A stretch of 64,000 bases of DNA from IMGVR_UViG_3300049793_000366:62001-126000; one strand, 5' to 3'. Shown: positions 47,615 to 60,492, counted from the first letter of the stretch. A program made the numbers and translations. The notes: generated by a model not told the origin, from the sequence alone.

Positions 47615-48130
47615 ATGAAAGATATCCAAAACATAATAGTATTTGACTTCGATAAAACTCTTATATACACAGTTGAAAGAGAAGAAGGTGAGAAGTTATA
47701 TAAGCAAGCTACTGGTAGAGACTGGGAGCATAAAGGGTGGTGGAGTCGTAAGGAAACGCTTGATATCGATATATTCTATCCCGTTAAGAATGAATGGGTT
47801 TACAAAAAATACCTTGAGGCTAAAGCTATGCCGAACACTATCATAATTCTTATGACTGGTCGTATTCTTCCATTAGAAGATGCTGTTATGAAGATATTAA
47901 ACCATCACGAGTTTGAGTTTGACCGCGTTTTCTGCTGTGATCCTCGTCAGGGTGGTGGTCACCCAATGGGCGCAACTTATGGCTTTAAGCTTAAAAAGTT
48001 TGAATCTTTGCTTCGTGAGTTCCCATATGCGAACCTAACTATGTATGACGATAGAACTGAACACGTTTTGGAATTCCAAAAGTGGGCAAGAACAACTAAA
48101 AGAAATATAGAAATTGTACACGTTAAATAA
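47615..48130 (+). CDS. HAD phosphatase resembling the 'Swiss Army Knife' RNA-repair HAD family
   Basis: VFDFDKTL, WWSRKETLD, ILMTGR, FK..F..LL and MYDDRTEH. Confidence 0.75.
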   Translation: MKDIQNIIVFDFDKTLIYTVEREEGEKLYKQATGRDWEHKGWWSRKETLDIDIFYPVKNEWVYKKYLEAKAMPNTIIILMTGRILPLEDAVMKILNHHEFEFDRVFCCDPRQGGGHPMGATYGFKLKKFESLLREFPYANLTMYDDRTEHVLEFQKWARTTKRNIEIVHVK

Positions 48131-48240
48131 TGAATCACAACGAGAAATTATTTATAATAATATTGTTCGTTTTGGGCATGGGTTATTTGATAATAACTGG
48201 TTTCATGTTTATAATTGATATTTTACATCGTATTTTATAA
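48130..48240 (+). CDS. Small membrane protein (36 aa)
   Basis: Not in the ORF track. The ATG overlaps the previous TAA and gives MNHNEKLFIIILFVLGMGYLIITGFMFIIDILHRIL. Confidence 0.45.
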   Translation: MNHNEKLFIIILFVLGMGYLIITGFMFIIDILHRIL

Positions 48241-48299
48241 CAAACAAATCAATTAAAAAGTAATATATAATCAACAAAATAAGATAAAAATCAAAAGAA

Positions 48300-48578
48300 A
48301 TGACAATAACTAAAGAAAAGAAGGATGCGAGTGTAAAGGAAACAACCGCGCATACTAAAAAACTTGTGTTACACAATGATGATTTCAACTCATTCGACCA
48401 TGTTATCGACTCACTCGTACAAGTGTGTGGACACCAGAGTGAGCAGGCAACGCAGTGTGCCTATATTGTTCACTATAAAGGTGAGTGTGATGTTAAATTA
48501 GGTGACGAAGAGACACTTTCTCTTATGAAAGATAAGCTGGTATTCAGAGGTCTTTCTGTTACCTTAGAAGATAATTAA
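48300..48578 (+). CDS. clpS: ClpS N-degron adaptor
   Basis: LVLHNDDFNSFDHVIDSLVQVC...QA.QCAYIVHYKG. Confidence 0.88.
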   Translation: MTITKEKKDASVKETTAHTKKLVLHNDDFNSFDHVIDSLVQVCGHQSEQATQCAYIVHYKGECDVKLGDEETLSLMKDKLVFRGLSVTLEDN

Positions 48579-48579
48579 T

Positions 48580-49365
48580 ATGAATGACAAAGAACTCCTA
48601 TTATCAATTTTAAATGCACCAGATCCATCAGCAGAGCTTATTAAGCTTGATGAATCTGGTGTACTTGATAAATTATTGCCCGAACTTACGGCATTAAAGG
48701 GAGTTGATTCTATTGATGGCCAACAACATAAAGATAACTTCGCACATACTTTACAGGTTTTAAAACAAACTGCTGAAGTATCACAGAATCCTTATCTAAG
48801 ATTAGTTGCCATTCTACACGATGCTGGTAAAGCACCAACCAAAAGATTCGATAAAGAGAGAGGATGGACATTTCACGACCATGAAAATGTAAGTGCTAAA
48901 ATGTCTGTTAAATTATTCAACAGATTAAACCTCGATATTGAAAATCTTGACTATGTTTCTACAATAATAAAATTTCATGGTATAACCAAAGCTCTTACTG
49001 AGCCAGGTGTTACTGACACTGCTATCAAACGATTCTATAATGAATTGGGTGAGTATGTGAGTGATTTATTATTATTTTGTAGTTGTGATATGACCACTAA
49101 ATCAGAAGCTAAACGTCTTAGATTTAGAAAAAGTCTAATAGAACTACACGAGAGAATTACTTCGATTAAGGAATCAGAAGAAGCTAAATTATGGAGGTCA
49201 CCAATCACTGGTGATTTTATCATGAAGGAGCTTGATATAAAGCCTTCTAAGAGGTTGGGTAATATTAAGTCTGAGATAGAACGTGCTATCAAAGCAAATG
49301 AAGTAGAGGATAATTTTGAATCTGCTTACAAGTATTTGTATCTTATCAAAGATAAGTTTCCTTAG
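48580..49365 (+). CDS. HD-domain protein corresponding to the C-terminal half of HD-type CCA-adding enzymes
   Basis: LLPEL...HKDNFAHTLQV...AILHDAGKAPT...FHDHE...A, SPITGDFIMKEL.IKP...LG.IK; no nucleotidyltransferase head. Confidence 0.8.
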   Translation: MNDKELLLSILNAPDPSAELIKLDESGVLDKLLPELTALKGVDSIDGQQHKDNFAHTLQVLKQTAEVSQNPYLRLVAILHDAGKAPTKRFDKERGWTFHDHENVSAKMSVKLFNRLNLDIENLDYVSTIIKFHGITKALTEPGVTDTAIKRFYNELGEYVSDLLLFCSCDMTTKSEAKRLRFRKSLIELHERITSIKESEEAKLWRSPITGDFIMKELDIKPSKRLGNIKSEIERAIKANEVEDNFESAYKYLYLIKDKFP

Positions 49366-49379
49366 TAATTTTTCTTTTT

Positions 49380-49706
49380 ATGACACCACAACAAATCCAA
49401 TTACAGCTACTTAAGCTGTGTCCTAAATTTAATAATAACGCTGATGATATTATCAGAAGCCTTATTGATAATGAACCATATTGGGATTCAATGATTGTGG
49501 ATAATGATTTGATGGTTAAATTAAGAGATTTGGGTACTGGTATCTGGAATGCTGATACTATTTATATAATGACTCACCACCGCGATGTGATGGAGCCAGT
49601 TGTAGAAAGCTGGAATCCCTCTGCCTGGGAATGGATTTCAAATCCGGATGATTTCTTAGGTGGTGCTGATGTAGATTGTCAGGTTGTTAAAGTATGGTTC
49701 GATTAA
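49380..49706 (+). CDS. Hypothetical protein
   Basis: 108-aa ORF in an operon-like run. Confidence 0.55.
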   Translation: MTPQQIQLQLLKLCPKFNNNADDIIRSLIDNEPYWDSMIVDNDLMVKLRDLGTGIWNADTIYIMTHHRDVMEPVVESWNPSAWEWISNPDDFLGGADVDCQVVKVWFD

Positions 49707-49716
49707 TAAGAAATAT

Positions 49717-49896
49717 ATGATATCAAATAACTTTTTAGACGAAATGACTAAGCTTGGTTATAGCGTCCATATTGATGTAGATGAAAAAATAAAAATAATT
49801 AAGGACAATCAGGAAATAATCCTTAGCTTTGAAAAAATTAGACGCATTTTTTTAAATGCTTTAGTGTCACACATAGATAACGCAAAAGATGTATAA
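49717..49896 (+). CDS. Hypothetical protein
   Basis: Probable start MISNNF. Confidence 0.45.
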   Translation: MISNNFLDEMTKLGYSVHIDVDEKIKIIKDNQEIILSFEKIRRIFLNALVSHIDNAKDV

Positions 49897-50197
49897 GTTC
49901 GAACCAGATGAAATTAGAGACTTTAAAATCATTGATATCAATGGTGGTCTCAAAAAGAAAGTCAAACTTACTTTAGTTGGATTAGATGGTAATGCTCACA
50001 ATTTAATTGGTAAGTTTCAATTAGCCGCTAAGAAAGCTGGGTGGTCAAAAGAAGATGTTAATTTCGTAGTTTGGAAAGCAACATCTGGTAATTATGATAA
50101 TCTTCTTGCTACTCTGATGGAATATTCATCGGATCCATTTGGTTCAGACGATGATGATATCGTCTATGTAGATGGTCAACCTTATAAAAAGATGTAA
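49889..50197 (+). CDS. Hypothetical protein
   Basis: LVGLDGNAHNLIG...A.K.GW....SGNYDNLL motif, which I recall from other small phage proteins. Confidence 0.6.
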   Translation: MYKFEPDEIRDFKIIDINGGLKKKVKLTLVGLDGNAHNLIGKFQLAAKKAGWSKEDVNFVVWKATSGNYDNLLATLMEYSSDPFGSDDDDIVYVDGQPYKKM

Positions 50198-50198
50198 A

Positions 50199-50657
50199 AT
50201 GGTAATGGAGATAACAGTATTGGTTTTATGTTTGTCGTTATTAGTCATGTCGTTTCTTGCCGTGAAGCAATATGGTAACAACCTACACCTGAGAGAAGAG
50301 AACGAATTATTAAAGAAGGAAGTCACTAAAAGCAAAACAGATAAGGATTATCTCGTTTCTATTGACCCTGGTGATAGAGCTATCATTCCTAACTATTCTT
50401 TGGTATACGCAAAGGGTGAAAAAGATGAACATCATTTCGAAGTAACATATGAAGTGGAGATAGTAGAAGTATCTCTTGATAAAGTAAAAGTTAAAGCAAC
50501 TGGATTAACAACACACGATAGTAAAATAAATAACGAGCCGTCACGCCGGGCATCATGTATAGCATTTATGCAGGACAAATGGATAAGCAGAAAAAGTATA
50601 GAATTAGTGGTGGATGACACAATGCGAAGAGATGCAAAATTACAACAATTATTATAG
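50199..50657 (+). CDS. N-anchored membrane protein
   Basis: Hydrophobic N-terminus VLVLCLSLLVMSFLAV; ends RDAKLQQLL. Confidence 0.55.
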   Translation: MVMEITVLVLCLSLLVMSFLAVKQYGNNLHLREENELLKKEVTKSKTDKDYLVSIDPGDRAIIPNYSLVYAKGEKDEHHFEVTYEVEIVEVSLDKVKVKATGLTTHDSKINNEPSRRASCIAFMQDKWISRKSIELVVDDTMRRDAKLQQLL

Positions 50658-50678
50658 TAATTTATGCTTAGGAAGCAA

Positions 50679-50706
50679 CAACTATTTTATAAATAATTAC
50701 TATAAT
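50679..50706 (+). promoter_or_regulatory. Candidate autoregulatory ECF promoter
   Basis: CAACTA-N16-TATAAT upstream of the ECF sigma gene. Confidence 0.55.
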
Positions 50707-50757
50707 AGTAATAACGGCAATTGAGGTAATCAAAAATTAAAAAATTAACGGCAATTT

Positions 50758-51378
50758 ATGAATTTAGACGGCAATCTAGTTGAATTTTCTGAACAAGAAA
50801 CTCTTTTCAGAGAGCGAACAGGGAACGATTTCGCATTCTTTTACAAGAAATATTACCCAAAACTTATTTACTACACATCCAAAATGTGTAATGATCCTCA
50901 AGAAGCAGAGGATGTATCTACCGAATCTTTTATGGTAGCTCTTCAAAAAATCGACAAGTACGAGAAAGACAAAGCACAATTTTCCACTTGGTTATTTACG
51001 ATAGCTCGAAACCTTATGTTACAAAATTTAAAAAGCAAGAAAAAGTTTGTATCAATGGATTACGAGATTGATGAAGAGGGAACAACAATGAAAGACTTTA
51101 TCCAAGAACCACATCAAGAGGGTTCTCATTCAGATGAACAGTTCTATGAGCTTTTTGATAAAAAGGCTGAGATTCTGAAAAAACACATCGATAAGCTTGA
51201 ACCAATTTACCGTACGGTTATTGAAATGAGAGAGCTTAAAAAAATGCCCTACAAGGACATCGCGGTTATACTTAATCTGAATGAAAATACAGTTAAGTCG
51301 CAGATACGCAATGGGCGAATAAAACTACAGAAAATGGTCAAGAAAGAATTTGATGTTCTTGACGAAATGTTCACGTAG
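50758..51378 (+). CDS. ECF-type (RpoE-like) sigma-70 factor
   Basis: Region 2 EAEDVSTESF...FSTWLFTIARN; region 4 PYKDIAVILNLNENTVKSQIRNGRIKL. Confidence 0.9.
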   Translation: MNLDGNLVEFSEQETLFRERTGNDFAFFYKKYYPKLIYYTSKMCNDPQEAEDVSTESFMVALQKIDKYEKDKAQFSTWLFTIARNLMLQNLKSKKKFVSMDYEIDEEGTTMKDFIQEPHQEGSHSDEQFYELFDKKAEILKKHIDKLEPIYRTVIEMRELKKMPYKDIAVILNLNENTVKSQIRNGRIKLQKMVKKEFDVLDEMFT

Positions 51379-51407
51379 TATATTGATTACCTCCGTTAGT
51401 TATGAGA

Positions 51408-51439
51408 ATAGCCTCGACCAAAATCGGGGCTTATTTTTT
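51408..51439 (+). terminator. Intrinsic terminator
   Basis: AGCCTCGA-CCAAAA-TCGGGGCT followed by a T-tract. Confidence 0.7.
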
Positions 51440-51440
51440 G

Positions 51441-51468
51441 CAACTTATTACTATATACTCACTATAAT
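51441..51468 (+). promoter_or_regulatory. Candidate middle promoter of thioredoxin
   Basis: CAACTT-N16-TATAAT. Confidence 0.6.
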
Positions 51469-51492
51469 TTAAACAAAAATAATATTCAAATA

Positions 51493-51819
51493 ATGGTTGC
51501 ATTTATAACAGAATTAAACAACACAAACTATAATGACTTCATTAAAAATGATGTAGTATTAGTTGATATTTGGGCGCAGTGGTGTGGTCCTTGTAAACAA
51601 ATAAGTCCTATAGTTGATGAAATATCAATCGACTTTAAAGATAGAGTATTCGTTGGTAAACTTGATGCTGATGCTGATGATAACAAAGAAATTCTTGCTG
51701 AACTTGGTGTTAGAAATATTCCTACAATTTTAATTTTCAAAAACGGTGTTATCGTAGATAAGAGTGTTGGTATGGTTTCTAAAACTGCTTTAGAAGATTT
51801 GCTTAATAAGCATTTATAG
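51493..51819 (+). CDS. trxA: Thioredoxin
   Basis: WAQWCGPCK active site and VRNIPT. Confidence 0.95.
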   Translation: MVAFITELNNTNYNDFIKNDVVLVDIWAQWCGPCKQISPIVDEISIDFKDRVFVGKLDADADDNKEILAELGVRNIPTILIFKNGVIVDKSVGMVSKTALEDLLNKHL

Positions 51820-51838
51820 TATTATATTAAATTGGGTG

Positions 51839-51928
51839 GCTCCCTTGAGTAGAAATACTCCTAAATACGAAAGTATAGAATAGTTAAGGCTGACCTTTAA
51901 GCATCCATCGAAAGATTATACAGGGGGC
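51839..51928 (+). ncRNA. Candidate structured ncRNA (five-way junction)
   Basis: Closing stem GCTCCCT/AGGGGGC encloses GAGTA-GAAA-TACTC, ATAC-GAAA-GTAT, TTAAGG-CTGA-CCTT(T)AA and ATC-GAAA-GAT. Confidence 0.6.
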
Positions 51929-51991
51929 GAAAAATTTAGTATAGTGAAAGAAAGAACCGTAATTGGTTCTTTTTTTATTTATATATACTAC

Positions 51992-52282
51992 ATGAAACAT
52001 CTAAGAAGATTTAACGAAGAGGTAATAAATGCGGAAGAACACAAGATAAAGTTCAGTTGTGATTTTGATCCAAGTTATAGTAAAATGATTTTAGATGCTG
52101 CTGAATCTGCTGGTGTAGACCTAATGGTTCCAGAGGGAGTTAAAAGAAGATATGTAGAAGAAATGCTACATATGTTAATGACCGATTATATCGAGGTTAT
52201 GATGCAGGAAACATTAAACGAATGGGTAGACCACAATGAATCCACTTTCGAAGATGTTATGAAACAAGTTTCTGCTGAATAA
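51992..52282 (+). CDS. Small protein with capsid-targeting-like leader
   Basis: Probable start MKHLRRFNEE, directly after TATATATA. Confidence 0.6.
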   Translation: MKHLRRFNEEVINAEEHKIKFSCDFDPSYSKMILDAAESAGVDLMVPEGVKRRYVEEMLHMLMTDYIEVMMQETLNEWVDHNESTFEDVMKQVSAE

Positions 52283-52774
52283 TTACTTACCTAAGTAATT
52301 CATTAATTCAATAATATTCTTGATTGTATATTGAAGTGATTCTAAGTTCTTAGAACAAGCTCTTAAGAATTCAATGTGAACATCAATAATTTGAATATTT
52401 CTCTCGTTCTCACCAAGATGTCCATCAATAAGAATTGATTTCTCACCCATGTTAGTTTTCAACCCAACACCAGTTGCGTAAAATAAGAACTTATCCTGTT
52501 TAATTTTCTTAAGCTTAACTTCTTCTTTGGATCTTCTGTTTAGGTAGAAGGAAATTTCCTCATTTATTGTTTGACGATAGTTAAGAGCATTCGATTGCAT
52601 TTCCATTATTTTCTTGGAATTACCAGCATTGAAATCAGATTTTAATACTTCATAAAGAGGGTTTATGTTTTCGTTCCAAATGCTTCTCTTCTTGGAGAAG
52701 AATTCTTCCAATTTATCATTTGTTTCGCTAGCCTTATTTATTCTATCGATTTCTTCTGGTGTATATACGTTCAT
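52283..52774 (-). CDS. Possible UvsY-like recombination mediator
   Basis: All-helical 163 aa ending EFL...KNLESLQYTIKNIIEL, resembling the UvsY C-terminus. Confidence 0.45.
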   Translation of the reverse strand: MNVYTPEEIDRINKASETNDKLEEFFSKKRSIWNENINPLYEVLKSDFNAGNSKKIMEMQSNALNYRQTINEEISFYLNRRSKEEVKLKKIKQDKFLFYATGVGLKTNMGEKSILIDGHLGENERNIQIIDVHIEFLRACSKNLESLQYTIKNIIELMNYLGK

Positions 52775-52809
52775 AAGTAATTTTATTATTTAAAAGTTAA
52801 AAGTTTTTA

Positions 52810-54216
52810 TTAATTATCCTCTTCTTCATCTTCTTCTGGTACATCATCGTAGCTCTCATCTGCGCCCTGCCATGTACCATTCGTAGAATTAAGAACATAG
52901 TCGTAGTCAAAGCCAGAATCGTTTGTTAGCATAAGTACATCTCTATTATCAGTTAGGTAACACAATGTATCTAAATACGGATAATAAGTACCATCCATAT
53001 CATTATCAAGACTTACTCTCAATATAGCATTTGGTAGTTGTTCATTGTCTTTACATATCGACTTAGTATTATCCTTATATGACCATCCGTTTTTAATTGC
53101 GTAATTGATGAATAGCTTTTCATCAGAGTCATTTATTGAATAAATTCTATCCATAAATACACCCTCGATTGATATATCTTTTAATTCGTCTTCAGTAGAT
53201 ATATCATCTAAATACCAAAGTAATGCTCTACCCACGATTTTATCTTCTTTGGTTACTAAGATGAGCATTTTTACTTGCCCTGGATTATTAGTGTATATTG
53301 AGAAATACTTCTGACATCTATTTAATCTCATACACGAGTTCCATAAAGTACCCTTGTGTATTCTATTTTCATAACCATGATATGTAGAATAGTGGTAGTA
53401 TTTAGCAACATCATCACCTTCTACTATTTTAAACTCTACACCGATTTCATCCAAGTTTAATTCTTTTCTTAATGCTAAAAATTCATTTACGAACTTCTCA
53501 ATATCAGAGTCAGTGAATGTTGGTGTACCATCAAATGTAACAGTACCTTCTACTAATACAGGTCTTGACTTTATAAACGTAAGTGGTTCATATTTATAAT
53601 CAACCATTGCTATGTTTTTACCATTATAGAATCTATATTTAGACCAGATTTGTTCAGTTGTAGTTATTGATTCTGCTTTAGCCTCTACATTTATTTGTTG
53701 ACTATCAACTTCATCAATATTACCATTCTCGATATTAAGCTCACCTATTAGTTTACCAGACATCCTTAGTTTACCGTTAAGTTTAATCAGAGCATTTATA
53801 AACTTAATATCATCTTTTGATAATTGGTCTGCGCTATTTAATATTACTTTATTATTATCATAGAAGTAAAACTGACCAGTATAGGTAAAGGTTAATTTAT
53901 TAGTCTTTAAATCAGTGATTATTTTACGAACTAATCTACCAGTTTTGATTGACTGTCTCCTACTATCTTCGAAGTTTGCTAACCAGTCAATTGTGTCTAC
54001 ACGATTCTTTGCTAAGAATGATAATTCAGTTAGGTTAGAACCTAAGTCAATATAATCAGTTGAAAAAATAAAGGCATCTCTGCTTATTCTTATTTTCATA
54101 AGAAACTCAGCTATCTTATCCTTTTTAGCTTTTAATATCTCTAAAATACCATATAAGTCGGTAGACATCTCCAACTCTTCATTGATGCTATTAAATTTAT
54201 TAAAGTTTGTAATCAT
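52810..54216 (-). CDS. Leader-bearing paralog of 37876-39426
   Basis: MITNFNKFNSINEE; IKTGRLVRKI, TDSDIEKFVNEF, WNSCMR, QVKMLIL, VGRALLW and FMDRIY. Confidence 0.75.
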   Translation of the reverse strand: MITNFNKFNSINEELEMSTDLYGILEILKAKKDKIAEFLMKIRISRDAFIFSTDYIDLGSNLTELSFLAKNRVDTIDWLANFEDSRRQSIKTGRLVRKIITDLKTNKLTFTYTGQFYFYDNNKVILNSADQLSKDDIKFINALIKLNGKLRMSGKLIGELNIENGNIDEVDSQQINVEAKAESITTTEQIWSKYRFYNGKNIAMVDYKYEPLTFIKSRPVLVEGTVTFDGTPTFTDSDIEKFVNEFLALRKELNLDEIGVEFKIVEGDDVAKYYHYSTYHGYENRIHKGTLWNSCMRLNRCQKYFSIYTNNPGQVKMLILVTKEDKIVGRALLWYLDDISTEDELKDISIEGVFMDRIYSINDSDEKLFINYAIKNGWSYKDNTKSICKDNEQLPNAILRVSLDNDMDGTYYPYLDTLCYLTDNRDVLMLTNDSGFDYDYVLNSTNGTWQGADESYDDVPEEDEEEDN

Positions 54217-55001
54217 TAGTTAAATCTATTATTGAACTTCAAAAGTCTCTTTGAAGCATTTTTAAGTGGTGTTCTTTTAAATATTTGTTCCGACTCTCTA
54301 TTCCATTCGATAATGTCATCCAAAAGAGTACTGTTTATTTTATCTATCAATTCCTTATAATCCATTACACCAAAGTGTTCTATTCTCTTAAACATACTTT
54401 GACCGTTACCAATAGTTTCGATTTTATATGACATTGTATATTCATCGATTTTATTAACACCGATTAATATTTCAATTATAAAAGAAACAACATCAGACTC
54501 AGTAAACTTTACTGTATCATCTTTCTTAAGCCATAATTCTTTTTCGCTACCAAATGGAGAAAGCTCATCTATGAATGGAGCATCCCATTTTAATTTATAA
54601 AGTAAATTCTCAACCGGGCTTAATTTATCAACCGCGGTCTTTATTAATTCTTTCTTGTCAATATTACCGCTCAAGAAGTCTATTTCTTGACTATTCTTAA
54701 GTTCTTCTGTATCAAATAGCTCAGATAATCTTTTATCTTCATTCCATTCAACTCTTTTAACATCCTCAAGGTTTACATAGTGTGGGTTACCCTCTATCTT
54801 AACACCTATTCTACCATCTTCGATATCGAATGGTGTCAATGGTTCTTTCTCCCAATTTTCATTATCAGAATATTCAGATACTATTTCTGAATATATAACT
54901 CCGCCGGCTTTGATACAATCAACTATATCTTGCTCGGTGATATTGTTGACTTTGTAGTTCTCATTAATGAAACTATTAAAACTCTTTATCTTTTTCATCA
55001 T
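54216..55001 (-). CDS. Hypothetical protein with capsid-targeting-like leader
   Basis: Probable start MMKKIKSFNSFINEN, after TATATATA at 55007-55014. Confidence 0.6.
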   Translation of the reverse strand: MMKKIKSFNSFINENYKVNNITEQDIVDCIKAGGVIYSEIVSEYSDNENWEKEPLTPFDIEDGRIGVKIEGNPHYVNLEDVKRVEWNEDKRLSELFDTEELKNSQEIDFLSGNIDKKELIKTAVDKLSPVENLLYKLKWDAPFIDELSPFGSEKELWLKKDDTVKFTESDVVSFIIEILIGVNKIDEYTMSYKIETIGNGQSMFKRIEHFGVMDYKELIDKINSTLLDDIIEWNRESEQIFKRTPLKNASKRLLKFNNRFN

Positions 55002-55031
55002 ATATCTATATATAAAATATATTAACATAAA

Positions 55032-56174
55032 ATGCTGGATGTAACTAAACAATGGATCGAAAACACACCGAAAGAATACAGAAAGAAATTCGGTCAATAT
55101 TTTACCCCTTCTCAAATAAGAAGTAGGCTATTCGAACTTTTACCAAAAATGGAGAATGCCTTAGTGCTTGAACCAGCTATTGGAACTGGTGAGTTTGTAG
55201 AAGACATACAACAGAATTTAAAAGGTTGTACGATAAATGGTTGTGATATAGATCCTGAAATAATTAAGAATGTATCACCGAGCATCCCTGTTAAATGTAT
55301 GTCATTCCTTGACATGAAAGCTGAATCGATATATGATTACGTTATTACTAACCCACCATATTATGAATTTACATTAGATGAGTCTACTAAAGAGAAATTC
55401 AATTATGTAGTTGATGGTAGAGTAAATATTTACTCTCTTTTCATAAAACATTCTATTGATTTCTTAAAGCCAGGTGGTTATTTAGCATTTGTGGTTCCTA
55501 CGTCAATGAATAATGGTAGATACTTCGAAAGACTTAGAAGCTATATAATGAATAATTGTGAGATTGAACACATTGAACTATTTAACAGTAGAAACTTTAT
55601 TGATGCTCAACAGAATGTACAGATTGTTATTCTTAGAAAAGCTTTAAATACTGGTAAGAATATATTTTCTAAAAATGGGCTTATTATATTTACACCTGAC
55701 TGGCAGAAACTTTCAAGTTACTATAAAGACAGTAAATCGATTAAAGAACTTGGATATGCGGTAAAAACTGGTAGTGTTGATTGGTCTAAGAATAAAGAGA
55801 AGCTAATCAACGATTCAAGTTACACGAAGTTAATCTGGTCTCATAATATTAAAAGAGGTAGTATAACACTTAGTACCAATAATGATAAGAAGCCTCAGTA
55901 TATAAATGCTCATGGTATAGAAGGCCCAGCAATAGTAGTCAATAGAATTACGGGTGCTGTTGGTAAAGGTGCTATCAAAGCTGGTATTGTTACTGGACGA
56001 TTTTTAGCTGAAAATCACGTAAATGTGATTACTCCGACTAACCCTCAATGTGAACTTAGTGTGATTTTGAAGTCCTTATGTGACCCAAGAACAGTTGAGT
56101 TATTACAGATGATAACTGGTAATACCCAGCTTTCTAAGACAGAATTAGAAAATTTAATACCAATTCGTATATAA
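55032..56174 (+). CDS. Solitary amino (N6-adenine-type) DNA methyltransferase, TaqI/Eco57I-like
   Basis: FGQYFTP, LEPAIGTG, NPPY, NIYSLF, GGYLAFVVP and a C-terminal target-recognition-like region. Confidence 0.85.
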   Translation: MLDVTKQWIENTPKEYRKKFGQYFTPSQIRSRLFELLPKMENALVLEPAIGTGEFVEDIQQNLKGCTINGCDIDPEIIKNVSPSIPVKCMSFLDMKAESIYDYVITNPPYYEFTLDESTKEKFNYVVDGRVNIYSLFIKHSIDFLKPGGYLAFVVPTSMNNGRYFERLRSYIMNNCEIEHIELFNSRNFIDAQQNVQIVILRKALNTGKNIFSKNGLIIFTPDWQKLSSYYKDSKSIKELGYAVKTGSVDWSKNKEKLINDSSYTKLIWSHNIKRGSITLSTNNDKKPQYINAHGIEGPAIVVNRITGAVGKGAIKAGIVTGRFLAENHVNVITPTNPQCELSVILKSLCDPRTVELLQMITGNTQLSKTELENLIPIRI

Positions 56175-56188
56175 ATTGTCCGGAATAT

Positions 56189-56219
56189 TTTGATATATAA
56201 CTGAAATTCACTATATTTG
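56189..56219 (+). promoter_or_regulatory. Bacteroidota promoter with an embedded late-like motif
   Basis: TTTG (56189-56192)-N19-TATATTTG (56212-56219); GATATATA at 56192-56199. Confidence 0.75.
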
Positions 56220-56223
56220 TGGT

Positions 56224-57441
56224 ATGACCAAAATTCAAAAGTTTTTTCAGTTTAATGAAAGTGCGCTAGGCTCTACTTTTTGGAATTTAATTCCAGAGTC
56301 TATTAAGACTATTCATGCCGTTTTTCAAGCAAGTGGTTATAAGCTATTCTTGGTCGGCGGTGCTGTGCGAGATTTTATTCAAGATGATATTCCAAAAGAT
56401 TATGACTTAGCTACTGATGCTCACCCGAAAGAGGTCATGAGCCTATTGGATGGTTATGAACTTAACTTACAAGGTAAAGCATTTGGTGTGGTTGTGGTAT
56501 ATACCGAAGACCAACCTCTTGGTATGGAGATAGCTACATTCAGAAAGGATGTTTCTAAAGGTAGAAATCCTTTAGTTGAGCTTATTGGTGTTACAATAGA
56601 AGATGATGTTAGAAGACGTGATATCACATACAATGCGTTATTCTTCGATTTGGATAAAAAGGAGATTGTAGATTTAGTTGGTGGCGTTGAAGATTTGAAG
56701 AACAAAATCACAAGAATGGTTGGTGATGCGATTGAGCGATTAGATGAAGATTCATTGAGAATTCTTAGAGCGTTCAGATTCGCCGCGAGATATAACAGTG
56801 AACTTGATGCTGATTTAGTTTCAGCATTGAGAAGAAGAAACTGGTTGAAAAATATTAACCACGAGACTGGTAAGCTTGAAAGAATCTCACAAGAGAGAAT
56901 TTGGCAAGATGAAATTGTTAAAGCATGGAAACAAGCTAAGAACAACTATACCAAGTATTTAAAATTCTTCACTGAGTTTGATATGTGGCCAGAAGTATTT
57001 CCGGGTGCTGTAATAAACTCTGATATCGTTAAGTGTGAACACTTCGAGGTTTACATGGCTAACCTTTTCAGAAATATGGATGTGGATGTTGCTCACCCTC
57101 AGAAGTCAGAAGCAGTATTGGTAGCTAATTACAAAATTGATGGTAATACAGCCGCAGTGATTGTTTTCTTAGTTAGTTTGTTACAGTTAACACCACAGAA
57201 TGCTCTTAGATTGTATAGAACTAAGACAAGATGCGTTTCTATGGGCTTTGAAGATATAGACCCAATGATAATCGATTGGTTCAATGTTAACTCAATAACC
57301 GATTCGACACATTCTAAATTCATCAGTTACAGACCTACTGTTGATGTTGAGTTTTTAAAATCTCAGGGTTTTAAAGATAAAGCTCTTGGTGATGAAATTC
57401 AGCGATTAGAGGTGATAGAATTCACTAAGTTAATAAAGTAA
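56224..57441 (+). CDS. cca: Class II tRNA nucleotidyltransferase (CCA-adding / poly(A) polymerase family) without HD domain
   Basis: LVGGAVRD, PKDYDLAT, EIATFR, RRDITYNAL, GGVEDL, EDSLRILRAFRFAAR and ISQERI; leader MTKIQKFFQFNES. Confidence 0.9.
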   Translation: MTKIQKFFQFNESALGSTFWNLIPESIKTIHAVFQASGYKLFLVGGAVRDFIQDDIPKDYDLATDAHPKEVMSLLDGYELNLQGKAFGVVVVYTEDQPLGMEIATFRKDVSKGRNPLVELIGVTIEDDVRRRDITYNALFFDLDKKEIVDLVGGVEDLKNKITRMVGDAIERLDEDSLRILRAFRFAARYNSELDADLVSALRRRNWLKNINHETGKLERISQERIWQDEIVKAWKQAKNNYTKYLKFFTEFDMWPEVFPGAVINSDIVKCEHFEVYMANLFRNMDVDVAHPQKSEAVLVANYKIDGNTAAVIVFLVSLLQLTPQNALRLYRTKTRCVSMGFEDIDPMIIDWFNVNSITDSTHSKFISYRPTVDVEFLKSQGFKDKALGDEIQRLEVIEFTKLIK

Positions 57442-57466
57442 AATTAGAATTCAATATATAACGACA

Positions 57467-58210
57467 ATGGCAAGATTACAATACATAAAAGATGTTTTAG
57501 GAAATAACTATGTGGGTATAGATGTTTACGCAGAAGAGGTTGCTCCTTATTTACAAAAACTGAAAGATTACATAGATGATGATAAGCAATTTGAAATACT
57601 AACTGCTAATCAAAAGTTGCGTGACCACGATAAATGGCACATCACTGTAATTAATGTATTTGATTATAACGACTTAGCTAAGTCACTTGGAATGAAAAAC
57701 TTTCTTGAGAGGTTAGATAATATCTTCAAGATGGAAGTTAACGATATCGATTTTAAAGGTATCGGTAGAGCAGAAAGAAATGGTAATGAAGCTTACTTTG
57801 TTGTTTGTCAGTCTGACTTTTTGAATTCTATTCGAGATTCTTTCAAATTAAACCCAATTGACCTTCATTGTACACTTGGGTTTAATAGAAAGGATGTTCA
57901 TGGTGTGAGGAAGAATGAGATTTTGGAGAATAAACCAAAATTTTTAAAAACTATTTCCAATCTTTATCATAAAGATAAATCTCTATCATTTATAAACGAC
58001 ATTCAAAATTTAGGAATGAAGTTAGATAATATAGAGGTTTTATCCATTACTGATACAGTGTTAACTATTCGTTCAAACGATGTGTGTTATGGTATATCTT
58101 TAATAAACACTGGTGATGAAGACGTTCTACGTATTGTATCGCAGTACGCAGATAATGGGAGTAAATCAATCAATCAATATCAAATAGAGAAAATACTGGG
58201 TAAACTATGA
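57467..58210 (+). CDS. 2H phosphoesterase
   Basis: Two HxT motifs (WHITVI, LHCTLGF) about 75 aa apart; AATATATA at 57453-57460. Confidence 0.75.
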   Translation: MARLQYIKDVLGNNYVGIDVYAEEVAPYLQKLKDYIDDDKQFEILTANQKLRDHDKWHITVINVFDYNDLAKSLGMKNFLERLDNIFKMEVNDIDFKGIGRAERNGNEAYFVVCQSDFLNSIRDSFKLNPIDLHCTLGFNRKDVHGVRKNEILENKPKFLKTISNLYHKDKSLSFINDIQNLGMKLDNIEVLSITDTVLTIRSNDVCYGISLINTGDEDVLRIVSQYADNGSKSINQYQIEKILGKL

Positions 58211-58536
58211 CCAGAATAAAAATTAAGCGCACCACAATGACAGAGGTTTTAGGGTACTTTAACTTATCGGAATGTACCGACAGAAAAAAAGTAACAACGT
58301 ATCTCAATGATTTAGCTGATAATTGTAAGATTACTTGGCACCAAGAAGATTATGACACTATAAAGATAGTGGATCTTGATTTGGATGAAACAGAGATAGA
58401 GGACATTACTAAGTTCTTGAGCGATTACGATGTAATACAAGATATCATTCAAGAGGATAATGATGATGATTTTTATGATTCTCGTGGTGATTTCGATGAT
58501 GATTTCAGTGATTTTGGCTATGGTGACATGGTTTAG
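58207..58536 (+). CDS. Hypothetical protein with acidic C-terminus
   Basis: ATGA overlap with the 2H gene; D-rich tail. Confidence 0.55.
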   Translation: MTRIKIKRTTMTEVLGYFNLSECTDRKKVTTYLNDLADNCKITWHQEDYDTIKIVDLDLDETEIEDITKFLSDYDVIQDIIQEDNDDDFYDSRGDFDDDFSDFGYGDMV

Positions 58537-58693: not shown

Positions 58694-59314
58694 ATGGCAG
58701 GTATCTTCGACAAAGCAAAAAAGAACGCAGTTGTTAAAACAGCAGCAAAAGACGAAAAAACTCGTGTAACTATCGATAACCCAGAGTTCTTCGATAAAAT
58801 TGCTACTTTACAAGTACTTAACGAAAACATGAAACGTGATAAAGCGAAAGCTGACATGATTTCTGATGAAGTTAAAGAAATGGGTATCGAGAAGTGGGCT
58901 GACCTTTATACCGAAAAAGGTAAAAATCCTGAAACCATCATGCTTGAAGCACAAAACGCTACTGGTGACACTGCTCAAGCAATGTTCATGGTTACAGACA
59001 AATACATCAAAATTGACGAAGCTCGTGCTGAACAGTTGAAAGAATCTTATGGTGATGATATCGTTACCGAAGAAACTACTTTCGCTTTCGATGCTAAGAT
59101 GCTTGAGAAATATGCTGATATCATCAGCGAATTAATTGAAAATAGCGACAAAATTAAAGATGCCGACAAAGGCCAGTTAATTGTTGCTACAACCTCTTAC
59201 AACGTAGCAAAAGGTACTATCGACAAGCTTGATAAGTACGGAGAAGTTGCTACAATGGTTCAAGAAGTGAAACCAGTTGTAATGATGAAAAATGTAGAGG
59301 TTATCAACGGGTAA
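58694..59314 (+). CDS. Hypothetical early protein
   Basis: 206-aa Lys/Ala/Asp-rich ORF with strongly biased, high-expression-like codon use. Confidence 0.7.
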   Translation: MAGIFDKAKKNAVVKTAAKDEKTRVTIDNPEFFDKIATLQVLNENMKRDKAKADMISDEVKEMGIEKWADLYTEKGKNPETIMLEAQNATGDTAQAMFMVTDKYIKIDEARAEQLKESYGDDIVTEETTFAFDAKMLEKYADIISELIENSDKIKDADKGQLIVATTSYNVAKGTIDKLDKYGEVATMVQEVKPVVMMKNVEVING

Positions 59315-59316
59315 CC

Positions 59317-59436
59317 TTTTAGGAGCGTCTCTTGTTGTCGAAGAGTGGTGAGAAATCATCACTCTTTGTCAGATGGTGACTAAATGATACAACCAAATAG
59401 GTCACGCTACTATTTAATATAGTAGTTCTCTTAGAA
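59317..59436 (+). ncRNA. Candidate four-way-junction RNA
   Basis: Closing stem TTTTAGGAG/CTCTTAGAA; arms CGTCT/AGATG ending in an 11-bp GAAA hairpin, GTGACT/GGTCAC and CTACTAT/ATAGTAG. Confidence 0.5.
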
Positions 59437-59445
59437 ATTAAAAAT

Positions 59446-59511
59446 GGGGATTTAGCTCAGTGTTTAGAGCGTCTGTAAAGAAGGTCGGTGGTTCGATTCC
59501 ATCAATCTCCA
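59446..59511 (+). tRNA. tRNA-Ala-like RNA with a truncated anticodon arm (no anticodon)
   Basis: Acceptor GGGGATT/AATCTCC (G3:U70) with A73; D-stem GCTC/GAGC; T-arm GGTGG-TTCGATT-CCATC; variable AGGTC; anticodon arm only TCT-GTAA-AGA. Confidence 0.75.
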
Positions 59512-59513
59512 CA

Positions 59514-59624
59514 AGTGTTGTAGGGCATATTAGGTCAGTTAAAGCACTGACATAGGGGTAGAATGACAGTACTTCGTTTTACCAAACAAAAACTACAAGT
59601 GTTTACCCGACACTTGGCAACACT
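59514..59624 (+). ncRNA. Candidate multi-stem RNA between the two tRNAs
   Basis: AGTGTTG/CAACACT closing stem; hairpins GTCAGT/ACTGAC, GGTAGAA/TTTTACC and CAAGTGT/ACACTTG. Confidence 0.5.
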
Positions 59625-59629
59625 GACCC

Positions 59630-59701
59630 GGTTTGGTAGCTCAATGGCAGAGCGGCGGATTCTAAACCCGAAGGTTGTGGGTTCGAACCCCATCCGAACC
59701 A
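59630..59701 (+). tRNA. Amber suppressor tRNA (anticodon CUA)
   Basis: Acceptor GGTTTGG/CCGAACC with A73; D-arm GCTC-AATGGCA-GAGC; anticodon loop TT-CTA-AA (59660-59666) on CGG/CCG; T-arm GTGGG-TTCGAAC-CCCAT; no encoded CCA. Confidence 0.78.
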
Positions 59702-59702
59702 C

Positions 59703-59757
59703 ACTGCTTAGTTACATAGTGTGTTACAGATTCTCCTTTAGCAAGAGGATCAGCAGT
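59703..59757 (+). ncRNA. Small candidate structured RNA after the suppressor tRNA
   Basis: ACTGCT/AGCAGT closing stem stacked on a GATTCTC/GAGGATC hairpin. Confidence 0.35.
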
Positions 59758-59759
59758 AA

Positions 59760-59789
59760 AACCCGTTCTTCGAGCGGGTTTTCTTTTTT
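59760..59789 (+). terminator. Intrinsic terminator ending the RNA array
   Basis: AACCCGTT-CTTCG-AGCGGGTT followed by TTCTTTTTT. Confidence 0.85.
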
Positions 59790-60492
59790 ACAATAAATTG
59801 ATTTTGGATATTGGTCTATCACCGCTCTTGAATACACCCATTCCTATAATTACGGAAATAGTATCATCTTTCTCTTCGGTTTTTATTGCGCGACTTATAA
59901 CTACGTCTAAATCATTCTTATTTATGATTAGAACAGACTTCTCAGTCCAAGTGGGTACTACATAGCATTTTCTATTATTAATGAAGCCAGCCTCAGAGAA
60001 ACCCATATTCTTACTAAATAGTAGACTATTCTGCTTTTTGTAAATATCATTGAATGCAGGCATACTGAATAAAACTATTGAGTCAGCCTTTAGACATGAT
60101 TCTATACTCGACATTACGTATTCCTTAGACTTAGTTTTCTTTGAGAAAAGTCTCTTGAAGAAATTCTTTGCCTTATAAAACTTGATGTATTCTATTACAT
60201 TAGCATTTGATGATAAATAATTTAGAATGTGACTATGAATGTGACTCTTAGCTAAATTAGCAGCTATTGGTGTTAAGTCAATATCATTTTTATTATGTTG
60301 GATATCAATATTATGTTCATCCAAAACACAGTCTATAAGTACCGTATCAGTTTCGATTAGGTCGCCTTTGTTGACGGTTGTTTGCTTTTGATACTTACCT
60401 TTATTTCTATCGATGTAGAAAATATTTACAATATCGCTAACGTTAGATGCATTCATAGCACCTGATAAAATCTCGTGTTTATCTATGTTCAT
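59788..60492 (-). CDS. Hypothetical protein
   Basis: 234-aa ORF converging on the terminator. Confidence 0.55.
   Translation of the reverse strand: MNIDKHEILSGAMNASNVSDIVNIFYIDRNKGKYQKQTTVNKGDLIETDTVLIDCVLDEHNIDIQHNKNDIDLTPIAANLAKSHIHSHILNYLSSNANVIEYIKFYKAKNFFKRLFSKKTKSKEYVMSSIESCLKADSIVLFSMPAFNDIYKKQNSLLFSKNMGFSEAGFINNRKCYVVPTWTEKSVLIINKNDLDVVISRAIKTEEKDDTISVIIGMGVFKSGDRPISKINLL

Follow-up and report, generated by a model that had tools for sequence, protein, structure and literature searches.

The DNA examined here is a window of 64,000 nucleotides, bases 62,001-126,000 of the IMG/VR virus record IMGVR_UViG_3300049793_000366 (507,910 bp, ~32% GC), which derives from a soil megaphage of ~0.5-0.7 Mb. 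Positions 47,615 to 58,210 of this window, counted from its first letter, carry genes for RNA-end-processing enzymes, all on the + strand, in two blocks. Block A comprises a stand-alone HAD phosphatase of the 'Swiss-army-knife' type (HAD_SAK_1), a ClpS-like adaptor and an HD phosphohydrolase, whereas block B comprises a CCA-type nucleotidyltransferase, a 2H phosphoesterase of the SAK type (2H-SAK) and a small acidic protein that extends just beyond the region. We propose that the region is an unbundled form of the bacterial nucleotidyltransferase-HD CCA addition/repair enzyme, lodged inside the known RNA-repair repertoire of jumbo phages; judged on homology and gene order, the arguments for and against this proposal seem to us evenly weighted. 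Four other explanations were considered, in the following order of weight: absence of functional coupling, counter-defence, maturation after ribozyme or nuclease cleavage, and Acb1-like anti-signalling.

A preliminary description of this DNA had presented a HAD phosphatase, an HD protein, a CCA-type nucleotidyltransferase and a 2H phosphoesterase as one dispersed kit healing tRNA 3' ends. The four genes lie where it placed them, all score above Pfam cut-offs with intact catalytic motifs, and the Pfam matches and motifs bear out the enzyme identities. The single pathway fared less well: the nucleotidyltransferase and 2H genes are a conserved same-strand pair and the HD protein is homologous to the repair half of CCA enzymes, but the four genes form no conserved unit. 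The kit is two separately inherited conserved blocks, and that interpretation is, as a whole, partly supported.

The nucleotidyltransferase-2H-SAK pair

The neighbourhood of 2H-SAK genes was compared in 58 IMG/VR loci, which fall into 49 clusters at 90% identity, 47 of them non-self. In 30 of these 47 clusters, the nucleotidyltransferase gene lies upstream of 2H-SAK on the same strand, no more than 50 bp away in 13 of the 30, and a p109-type acidic protein follows 2H-SAK directly, at 80 bp or less, in 17 dereplicated clusters. The order holds although 2H identity in these loci is only 31-50%, and the methylase, sigma factor and thioredoxin neighbours are not kept. This persistence, often with abutting genes, while other neighbours change, is the chief point against the absence of coupling. 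According to that explanation, the CCA enzyme would only mature tRNAs, the 2H, HAD, HD and AAA_33 kinase proteins would heal ends for T4-like anticodon-loop ligation by Rnl1- or Rnl2-type ligases, and the adjacency of the CCA and 2H genes would be inherited synteny. We regard it as possible, if rather unlikely, and return to it below with the ligases.

The nucleotidyltransferase (56224..57441, +; 405 aa) is a class II tRNA nucleotidyltransferase with a PolyA_pol head (PF01743, 8.8e-28) and no HD domain of its own, encoded by the sole PolyA_pol gene in the genome. All motifs of the class II set are present (GGxxRD, DxD, (T)FRxD, RRD and EDxxR), and their residues are invariant in 29 homologues: G45, G46, R49 and D50; D59 and D61; R107 and D109; R131, R132 and D133; E175, D176 and R179. 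The closest solved structures are CCA-adding enzymes (6ibp, 5e-31), and the protein is most likely CCA-adding.

The 2H-SAK protein (57467..58210, +; 247 aa; PF22547, 1.2e-17, above cut-off) consists of a 2H domain (residues 10-155) and a beta-rich C-terminal domain, and both of its HxT motifs (H58/T60 and H134/T136) are invariant. In a search with its AlphaFold model, which has a predicted local distance difference test score (pLDDT) of 90.5, the 21 best VIA-align matches were all 2H enzymes, headed by the Deinococcus radiodurans CPDase and by LigT (Z 7.8), and the C-terminal domain gave no convincing structural match (Z ≤4.5). Relatives of 2H-SAK are fused with PNKP-type HAD phosphatases or AAA_33 kinases, and one in a giant-virus metagenome-assembled genome unites 2H-SAK, a PTP phosphatase and a kinase in a single protein; the combination of HAD and 2H modules invoked earlier thus exists in this family. 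On the strength of the family and of these kinase and phosphatase fusions, 2H-SAK is a predicted 2',3'-cyclic phosphodiesterase acting on RNA ends.

The same fold raises the explanation that 2H-SAK is an Acb1-like phosphodiesterase destroying cyclic (oligo)nucleotide defence signals and has nothing to do with tRNA. Phage Acb1 (Z 6.1) and the poxvirus cGAMP phosphodiesterase are also 2H enzymes, and one 2H-SAK family member from the representative library (P0192; 393 aa, with 2H-SAK as its C-terminal domain) has weak Cap15-like transmembrane and receptor matches in its N-terminal part, all below cut-offs. Structural matches to CPDase and LigT-type enzymes are stronger, however (Z 7.2-7.8), and Pfam places the protein in the 2H-SAK family of RNA repair. 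Its gene is, moreover, regularly found in linkage with those for a tRNA nucleotidyltransferase, kinases, phosphatases and RNA ligases, and we find anti-signalling highly improbable.

The third gene of block B encodes the small acidic protein p109 (58207..58536, +), which overlaps the 2H stop codon and ends in a D/E-rich tail with a terminal aromatic residue; it has no Pfam, PHROG or NCBIfam match and no useful match in the protein atlas. Next comes p206 (58694..59314, +; 206 aa), a conserved phage protein with a homologue 3' of 2H in 28 loci (46-58% identity), within a few kb in many of them. Its model (pLDDT 81) found no match in a PDB structure search, and the protein atlas yielded phage hypotheticals only.

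The proposed operon of block B would run from the CCA-adding enzyme through 2H-SAK to the acidic protein, probably co-transcribed with p206, a tRNA-Ala-derived RNA, a spacer and an amber-suppressor tRNA. First, the 2H enzyme would open 2',3'-cyclic phosphates at tRNA 3' ends. Second, the HAD phosphatase, the HD phosphatase or both would take off the remaining 2'- or 3'-phosphate. Finally, the nucleotidyltransferase would add or complete CCA, and the same enzyme would carry out the routine maturation of the CCA-less phage tRNAs. The healing enzymes need not be private to this route and could equally prepare ends for the Rnl1- and Rnl2-type ligases of the phage. We infer the substrates, the order of the reactions and any link to host defence.

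The detached HD protein and the HAD phosphatase

The most informative single result is the homology of the HD protein to CCA enzymes. This phosphohydrolase (48580..49365, +; 261 aa; Pfam HD, 7e-10, above cut-off) retains its metal-binding residues (H56, H80-D81, H101, H133 and D170). It matches positions 217-437 of 466 in TIGR02692, an actinobacterial CCA-enzyme model (4e-38), positions 185-394 of 409 in NF008137, the 'multifunctional CCA addition/repair protein', and profile positions 183-376, the C-terminal part, of the tRNA nucleotidyltransferase family phrog_2244; it also aligns with residues 240-492 of the class II enzyme of PDB 3wfo (E 5e-11). The nucleotidyltransferase covers only positions 15-219 of TIGR02692 and 2-199 of NF008137. 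Since the HD protein matches the C-terminal halves of the same two models of which the nucleotidyltransferase matches the N-terminal halves, its gene appears as a CCA-enzyme half without a head. As judged from these alignments, the protein is the detached C-terminal 'repair' half of an HD-type bacterial CCA addition/repair enzyme; head and HD do not share a polypeptide here, their genes being 7 kb apart. In E. coli, the HD domain of the CCA enzyme removes 2',3'-cyclic phosphate from tRNA ends, as stated in PMC6961547, which cites Yakunin 2004.

HAD_SAK_1 (47615..48130, +; 171 aa; PF10307, 2.2e-15, 57 bits against a cut-off of 25.6) has a single copy in the genome. HAD motifs I-IV, represented by D11-x-D13-x-T15, T81, K125 and D145-D146, are invariant in 10 sequences, and the protein is a predicted 2'/3'-phosphomonoesterase. 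Between the HAD and HD genes lies that of the ClpS-like adaptor (48300..48578, +; 92 aa; PF02617, 2.9e-16). In relatives, too, this putative protease adaptor stands next to HAD_SAK_1, and HAD_SAK_1-ClpS, in some cases with HD, is conserved as a separate block, down to 47% identity.

The two blocks adjoin only in this phage genome and its 709-kb sister. In the uncultured huge phages LR756502 and LR745206, hundreds of kb separate the blocks, and in relatives the HAD and HD genes are tens to hundreds of kb away from the CCA-2H pair. The clustering of four of about ten RNA-end genes within 10.6 kb has P ~0.007 if the genes are independent. The genes are inherited as two blocks, however, and for two given blocks to lie this close, P is ~0.04. 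The co-occurrence proposed as a check on the preliminary description was examined in 22 larger related records carrying 2H-SAK. It held for the class II nucleotidyltransferase, present in 17 of the 22, but not for HAD_SAK_1 (9/22, or 6 of the 11 near-complete records) nor for the HD protein (2/22).

These distributions bring us to the points that weigh against an unbundled CCA addition/repair enzyme. In most relatives, neither HAD_SAK_1 nor the HD protein is linked to the pair, and often they are missing altogether; common descent, and not a functional link, may account for part of the conserved order of the pair itself. No fusion of a nucleotidyltransferase with 2H was seen among the 150 best of 1329 family members. 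Moreover, the best NCBIfam score of the nucleotidyltransferase is for pcnB (148 bits), ahead of the CCA models (133 bits), all of them below cut-offs, and sequence alone cannot decide between a CCA-adding enzyme and a poly(A) polymerase. Finally, this DNA is known from one sequencing run only, a soil DNA metagenome.

Comparison with the E. coli Cca type of CCA addition/repair protein shows what the proposed unbundling would involve. The full set of class II motifs is present in the phage nucleotidyltransferase, homology links the HD protein with the C-terminal half, which contains the HD domain, and the proposed chemistry is the same, a cyclic phosphodiesterase and a phosphatase followed by CCA addition. 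In contrast to the bacterial protein, the phage parts are separate genes, 2H rather than HD stands beside the nucleotidyltransferase, a SAK-type HAD is added, and the HD half, 7 kb distant here, is missing from most relatives.

Ligases, tRNA load and host defence

As previously reported, no RNA ligase is encoded in the window; ligases lie elsewhere in the genome. An Rnl1-type ligase (PF09511, 447 aa) is found at ~375 kb, and two PF09414 RNA ligases, one DNA-ligase-like nucleotidyltransferase and two AAA_33 kinases are also encoded outside the window. One AAA_33 kinase gene (162 aa) overlaps stop to start with that of an NT5C-type HAD (149 aa) at L012:1465-2399 (genome ~151.4-152.3 kb), and this pair may be a split polynucleotide kinase-phosphatase (Pnkp). 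The genome holds, all of it outside the window, the T4-type combination of an Rnl1-family ligase with putative 5'-kinase/3'-phosphatase genes, and RtcB is absent from it. With these ligases and kinases present, and an Rnl1-family ligase in 18 of the 22 records carrying 2H-SAK, neither a ligase-free route nor one distinct from T4 repair could be upheld.

The same genes are the main support for the absence of coupling. In two related loci (L061 and L062), Rnl1 lies 2-7 kb from 2H, and in distant lineages 2H-SAK genes stand beside those of PF09414 ligases; the fusion of 2H-SAK to kinases and phosphatases in relatives and the CCA-less state of all phage tRNAs point in the same direction. In this genome, however, the ligases are 65-310 kb away from the CCA-2H pair, and the pair persists in a near-complete relative that has just 4 tRNAs. 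Absence of coupling also corresponds to the published reading for jumbo phages. In the portion available to us of their account of the jumbo-phage RNA-repair repertoire, Iyer, Anantharaman, Krishnan, Burroughs and Aravind (2021; PMC7824862) have 2H and stand-alone HAD proteins heal ends for ligases, and list separately the CCA enzymes, which restore CCA. Their parts list is the same as ours: 2H, stand-alone SAK HAD, HD phosphatase, polynucleotide kinase, Rnl1/Rnl2, CCA enzyme and many tRNAs. The components and the general idea are already described. That portion of the article does not describe the CCA-2H-SAK-acidic protein operon or the headless HD half, and to our knowledge these two features and the parallel with the fused bacterial enzyme are undescribed in the parts of the literature examined.

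Two other systems deserve comparison. T4 Pnkp/Rnl1 likewise relies on healing by a HAD-family phosphatase and a P-loop kinase, and an Rnl1-family ligase is encoded in the same phage genome. Nevertheless, the genes of the window include neither kinase nor ligase, the HAD is of the SAK_1 rather than the Pnkp type, and, unlike in T4, the conserved neighbour of the phage cyclic phosphodiesterase is a nucleotidyltransferase. The 2H-SAK and HAD_SAK_1 families are shared with the 'Swiss Army Knife' proteins of eukaryotes and giant viruses; in the phage, by contrast, each domain is a separate small protein, and 2H-SAK and HAD_SAK_1 are not adjacent. The SAK families were reportedly defined by Burroughs and Aravind in 2016.

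The tRNA content of the genome bears on what the pair may act upon. Between 61 (ARAGORN) and 68 (Rfam) tRNA-type genes were detected, and none of the ~61 phage tRNAs has an encoded CCA, so that a CCA-adding activity is needed for every one of them. In 58 of the 61, N73-C74 is followed by A/T-rich sequence (CAAA in 29 and CTAA in 8 of the 61); clusters occur at ~320, 392, 408, 412, 420 and 432 kb. C74 followed by A/T-rich sequence, never CCA, recurs in nearly every tRNA of the genome and of relatives G003, G017, G018 and G020, and resembles a conserved signature of 3' processing. The CCA-2H pair is retained in relative G003 (98% complete), which has only 4 tRNAs, whereas G018 and G021, with 23 and 49 mostly CCA-less tRNAs respectively, have no phage nucleotidyltransferase. 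From this contrast, drawn from a small sample of five relatives, the pair is not simply scaled to the phage tRNA load, which argues that phage tRNA maturation is not the whole story.

The same distribution bears on the explanation of a dedicated, ligase-independent counter-defence against host nucleases or effectors damaging the acceptor or CCA end of tRNAs, as originally put forward. The conserved CCA-2H operon, with or without the acidic protein, the retention of the HD repair half as a separate gene, the persistence of the pair in G003 despite its few tRNAs, which suggests action on host tRNAs, and a nucleotidyltransferase whose presence does not follow tRNA number in the five relatives all favour it. 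Conversely, no cognate host nuclease is known or was found here, the four genes are not conserved as a unit, and ligases and kinases are encoded in the genome. Moreover, a CCA enzyme cannot rebuild cuts inside the acceptor stem. On balance, we consider such a counter-defence unlikely. A more specific version, which we find equally doubtful, would make the operon a dedicated, ligase-independent repair system for the 3' ends of host and phage tRNAs. It would counter a bacterial defence putting the CCA end out of action, whether through a cut with a 2',3'-cyclic phosphate left behind or through 3'-(pyro)phosphorylation; the HD half and the SAK-type HAD would then be optional phosphatase modules, and the acidic protein an inhibitor or a decoy.

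Should the CCA-2H pair work as a unit, huge phages would have rebuilt bacterial CCA addition/repair from different parts, with a 2H enzyme replacing, or supplementing, the HD domain, and the tRNA 3' end would be a contested site for these phages, alongside the anticodon loop. The pair would offer a simple three-enzyme pathway with a conserved partner, the acidic p109, and it draws attention to chemistry at the 3' end for which recent studies of phage tRNAs processed by ribozymes give no explanation. Were the genes uncoupled, the locus would be an ordinary part of the known jumbo-phage toolkit for RNA repair and tRNA maturation.

Downstream RNAs and genomic setting

Two tRNA-type genes follow block B (Rfam 59446-59511, 53 bits, and 59630-59701, 62 bits), and neither is followed by CCA, in agreement with the preliminary description. 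The 'unusual tRNA array' it saw there does contain tRNA-type genes but amounts to two elements only, the first without an anticodon arm. This first element (59446..59511, +) is a tRNA-like RNA derived from tRNA-Ala, in which the arms of the acceptor, D and T type are kept and the place of the anticodon arm is taken by a GUAA loop on a 3-bp stem, 11 model positions being reduced to 4 nt; the missing arm is why ARAGORN rejects the element. A covariance model of the element identified the phage's own tRNA-Ala(UGC) as the nearest full tRNA. The element is conserved in the sister genome (L017), where G3:C70 and an encoded CCA stand in place of the G3:U70 pair and the CCA-less end found here. Since a covariance search of 1.09 Mb of related loci recovered only the sister copy and ordinary tRNAs, it is not a conserved partner of the module, and it is either a copy of tRNA-Ala in decay or a small RNA specific to this lineage.

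The second element (59630..59702, +; ARAGORN), a complete cloverleaf with a 7-nt anticodon loop, is an amber-suppressor tRNA (anticodon CUA), intact here and decayed in its 3' half in the sister. The two elements are separated by a structured 118-nt spacer RNA (59512..59629, +), conserved in the sister, with three hairpins and a closing long-range stem; its minimum free energy of -36 kcal/mol (z -3.4) was equalled by none of 200 shuffles, and it matched no Rfam family at E up to 1. A strong intrinsic terminator with an 11-bp stem and a T-run follows (59758..59792, +). As this is the only terminator-like site on the + strand between 54.9 and 59.9 kb, the genes from the CCA enzyme through the suppressor tRNA may constitute one transcription unit.

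This arrangement is relevant to the explanation whereby a self-cleaving ribozyme, or a metal-independent nuclease, trims tRNA 3' trailers and leaves cyclic-phosphate ends that the 2H, phosphatase and CCA enzymes would finish. Theta (HDV-like) ribozymes have been found directly downstream of phage tRNAs, often amber suppressors, and were proposed to remove trailers; in the phages concerned, tRNA nucleotidyltransferase is enriched 250-fold and DRB0094-type RNA ligase 140-fold (PMC10879173). A conserved structured RNA lying between a tRNA-like element and a suppressor tRNA fits this scheme. However, no ribozyme was matched by Rfam in 59320-59800 (E up to 1; that Rfam 15 includes a theta-ribozyme model is unconfirmed) or across 31 kb of tRNA arrays (E up to 0.5), and the 5-15 nt between most phage tRNAs are too few to accommodate a ribozyme. 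Maturation of this kind is, in our view, a very remote prospect, and the unbundled CCA addition/repair enzyme remains our preferred reading of the locus.

The presence of a suppressor tRNA is not accounted for by recoding. Stop-usage and open-frame tests indicate the standard genetic code: the long frames end in TAA (219), TAG (20) or TGA (19), reading TAG as sense gains no more open frame than reading TGA as sense, and only one long same-frame pair is split by TAG. Recoding of TAG was rejected as the reason for the suppressor, as was recoding of TGA by the same tests. In relatives G018 and G019, the HAD_SAK_1 match contains one in-frame TGA, and this lineage may read TGA as sense.

The same proteins are also encoded by a 711,805-bp contig, and the sister genome, of 709,085 bp, is in GCA_040384045.1. 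The 507,910-bp IMG/VR 'provirus' appears to have been cut out of the larger contig, and the true phage genome may be ~0.7 Mb. The region had no match among GenBank phages by megablast; its relatives, found at the protein level only, are the uncultured huge phages LR756502, LR745206, LR756504 and LR756511.

Several other features were recorded in the window and beyond. Between the two blocks are encoded a sigma-70 family factor (50758-51378), a thioredoxin (51493-51819), a weak UvsY-like protein (52283-52774) and an Eco57I/N6-type DNA methylase (55032-56174). On the - strand, the 299-aa protein of 54216-55115 has a domain of ~80 aa in common with small opposite-strand open reading frames (ORFs) upstream of the CCA gene in ~30 related loci. 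A phage tmRNA lies at genome c59,956-60,348, 1.6 kb left of the window start, with the tag peptide AKSKTTATQVEELEIA. ORF coverage is very low (0.2) at genome 460-470 kb under all codes tested. Finally, a GOLLD RNA (RF02032, 232 bits, E 7e-65) was detected at L088:2356-2770 (genome 432,855-433,269), with tRNA genes on both sides; genes for a PF09414 RNA ligase and for IF3 lie ~2.5 kb away.

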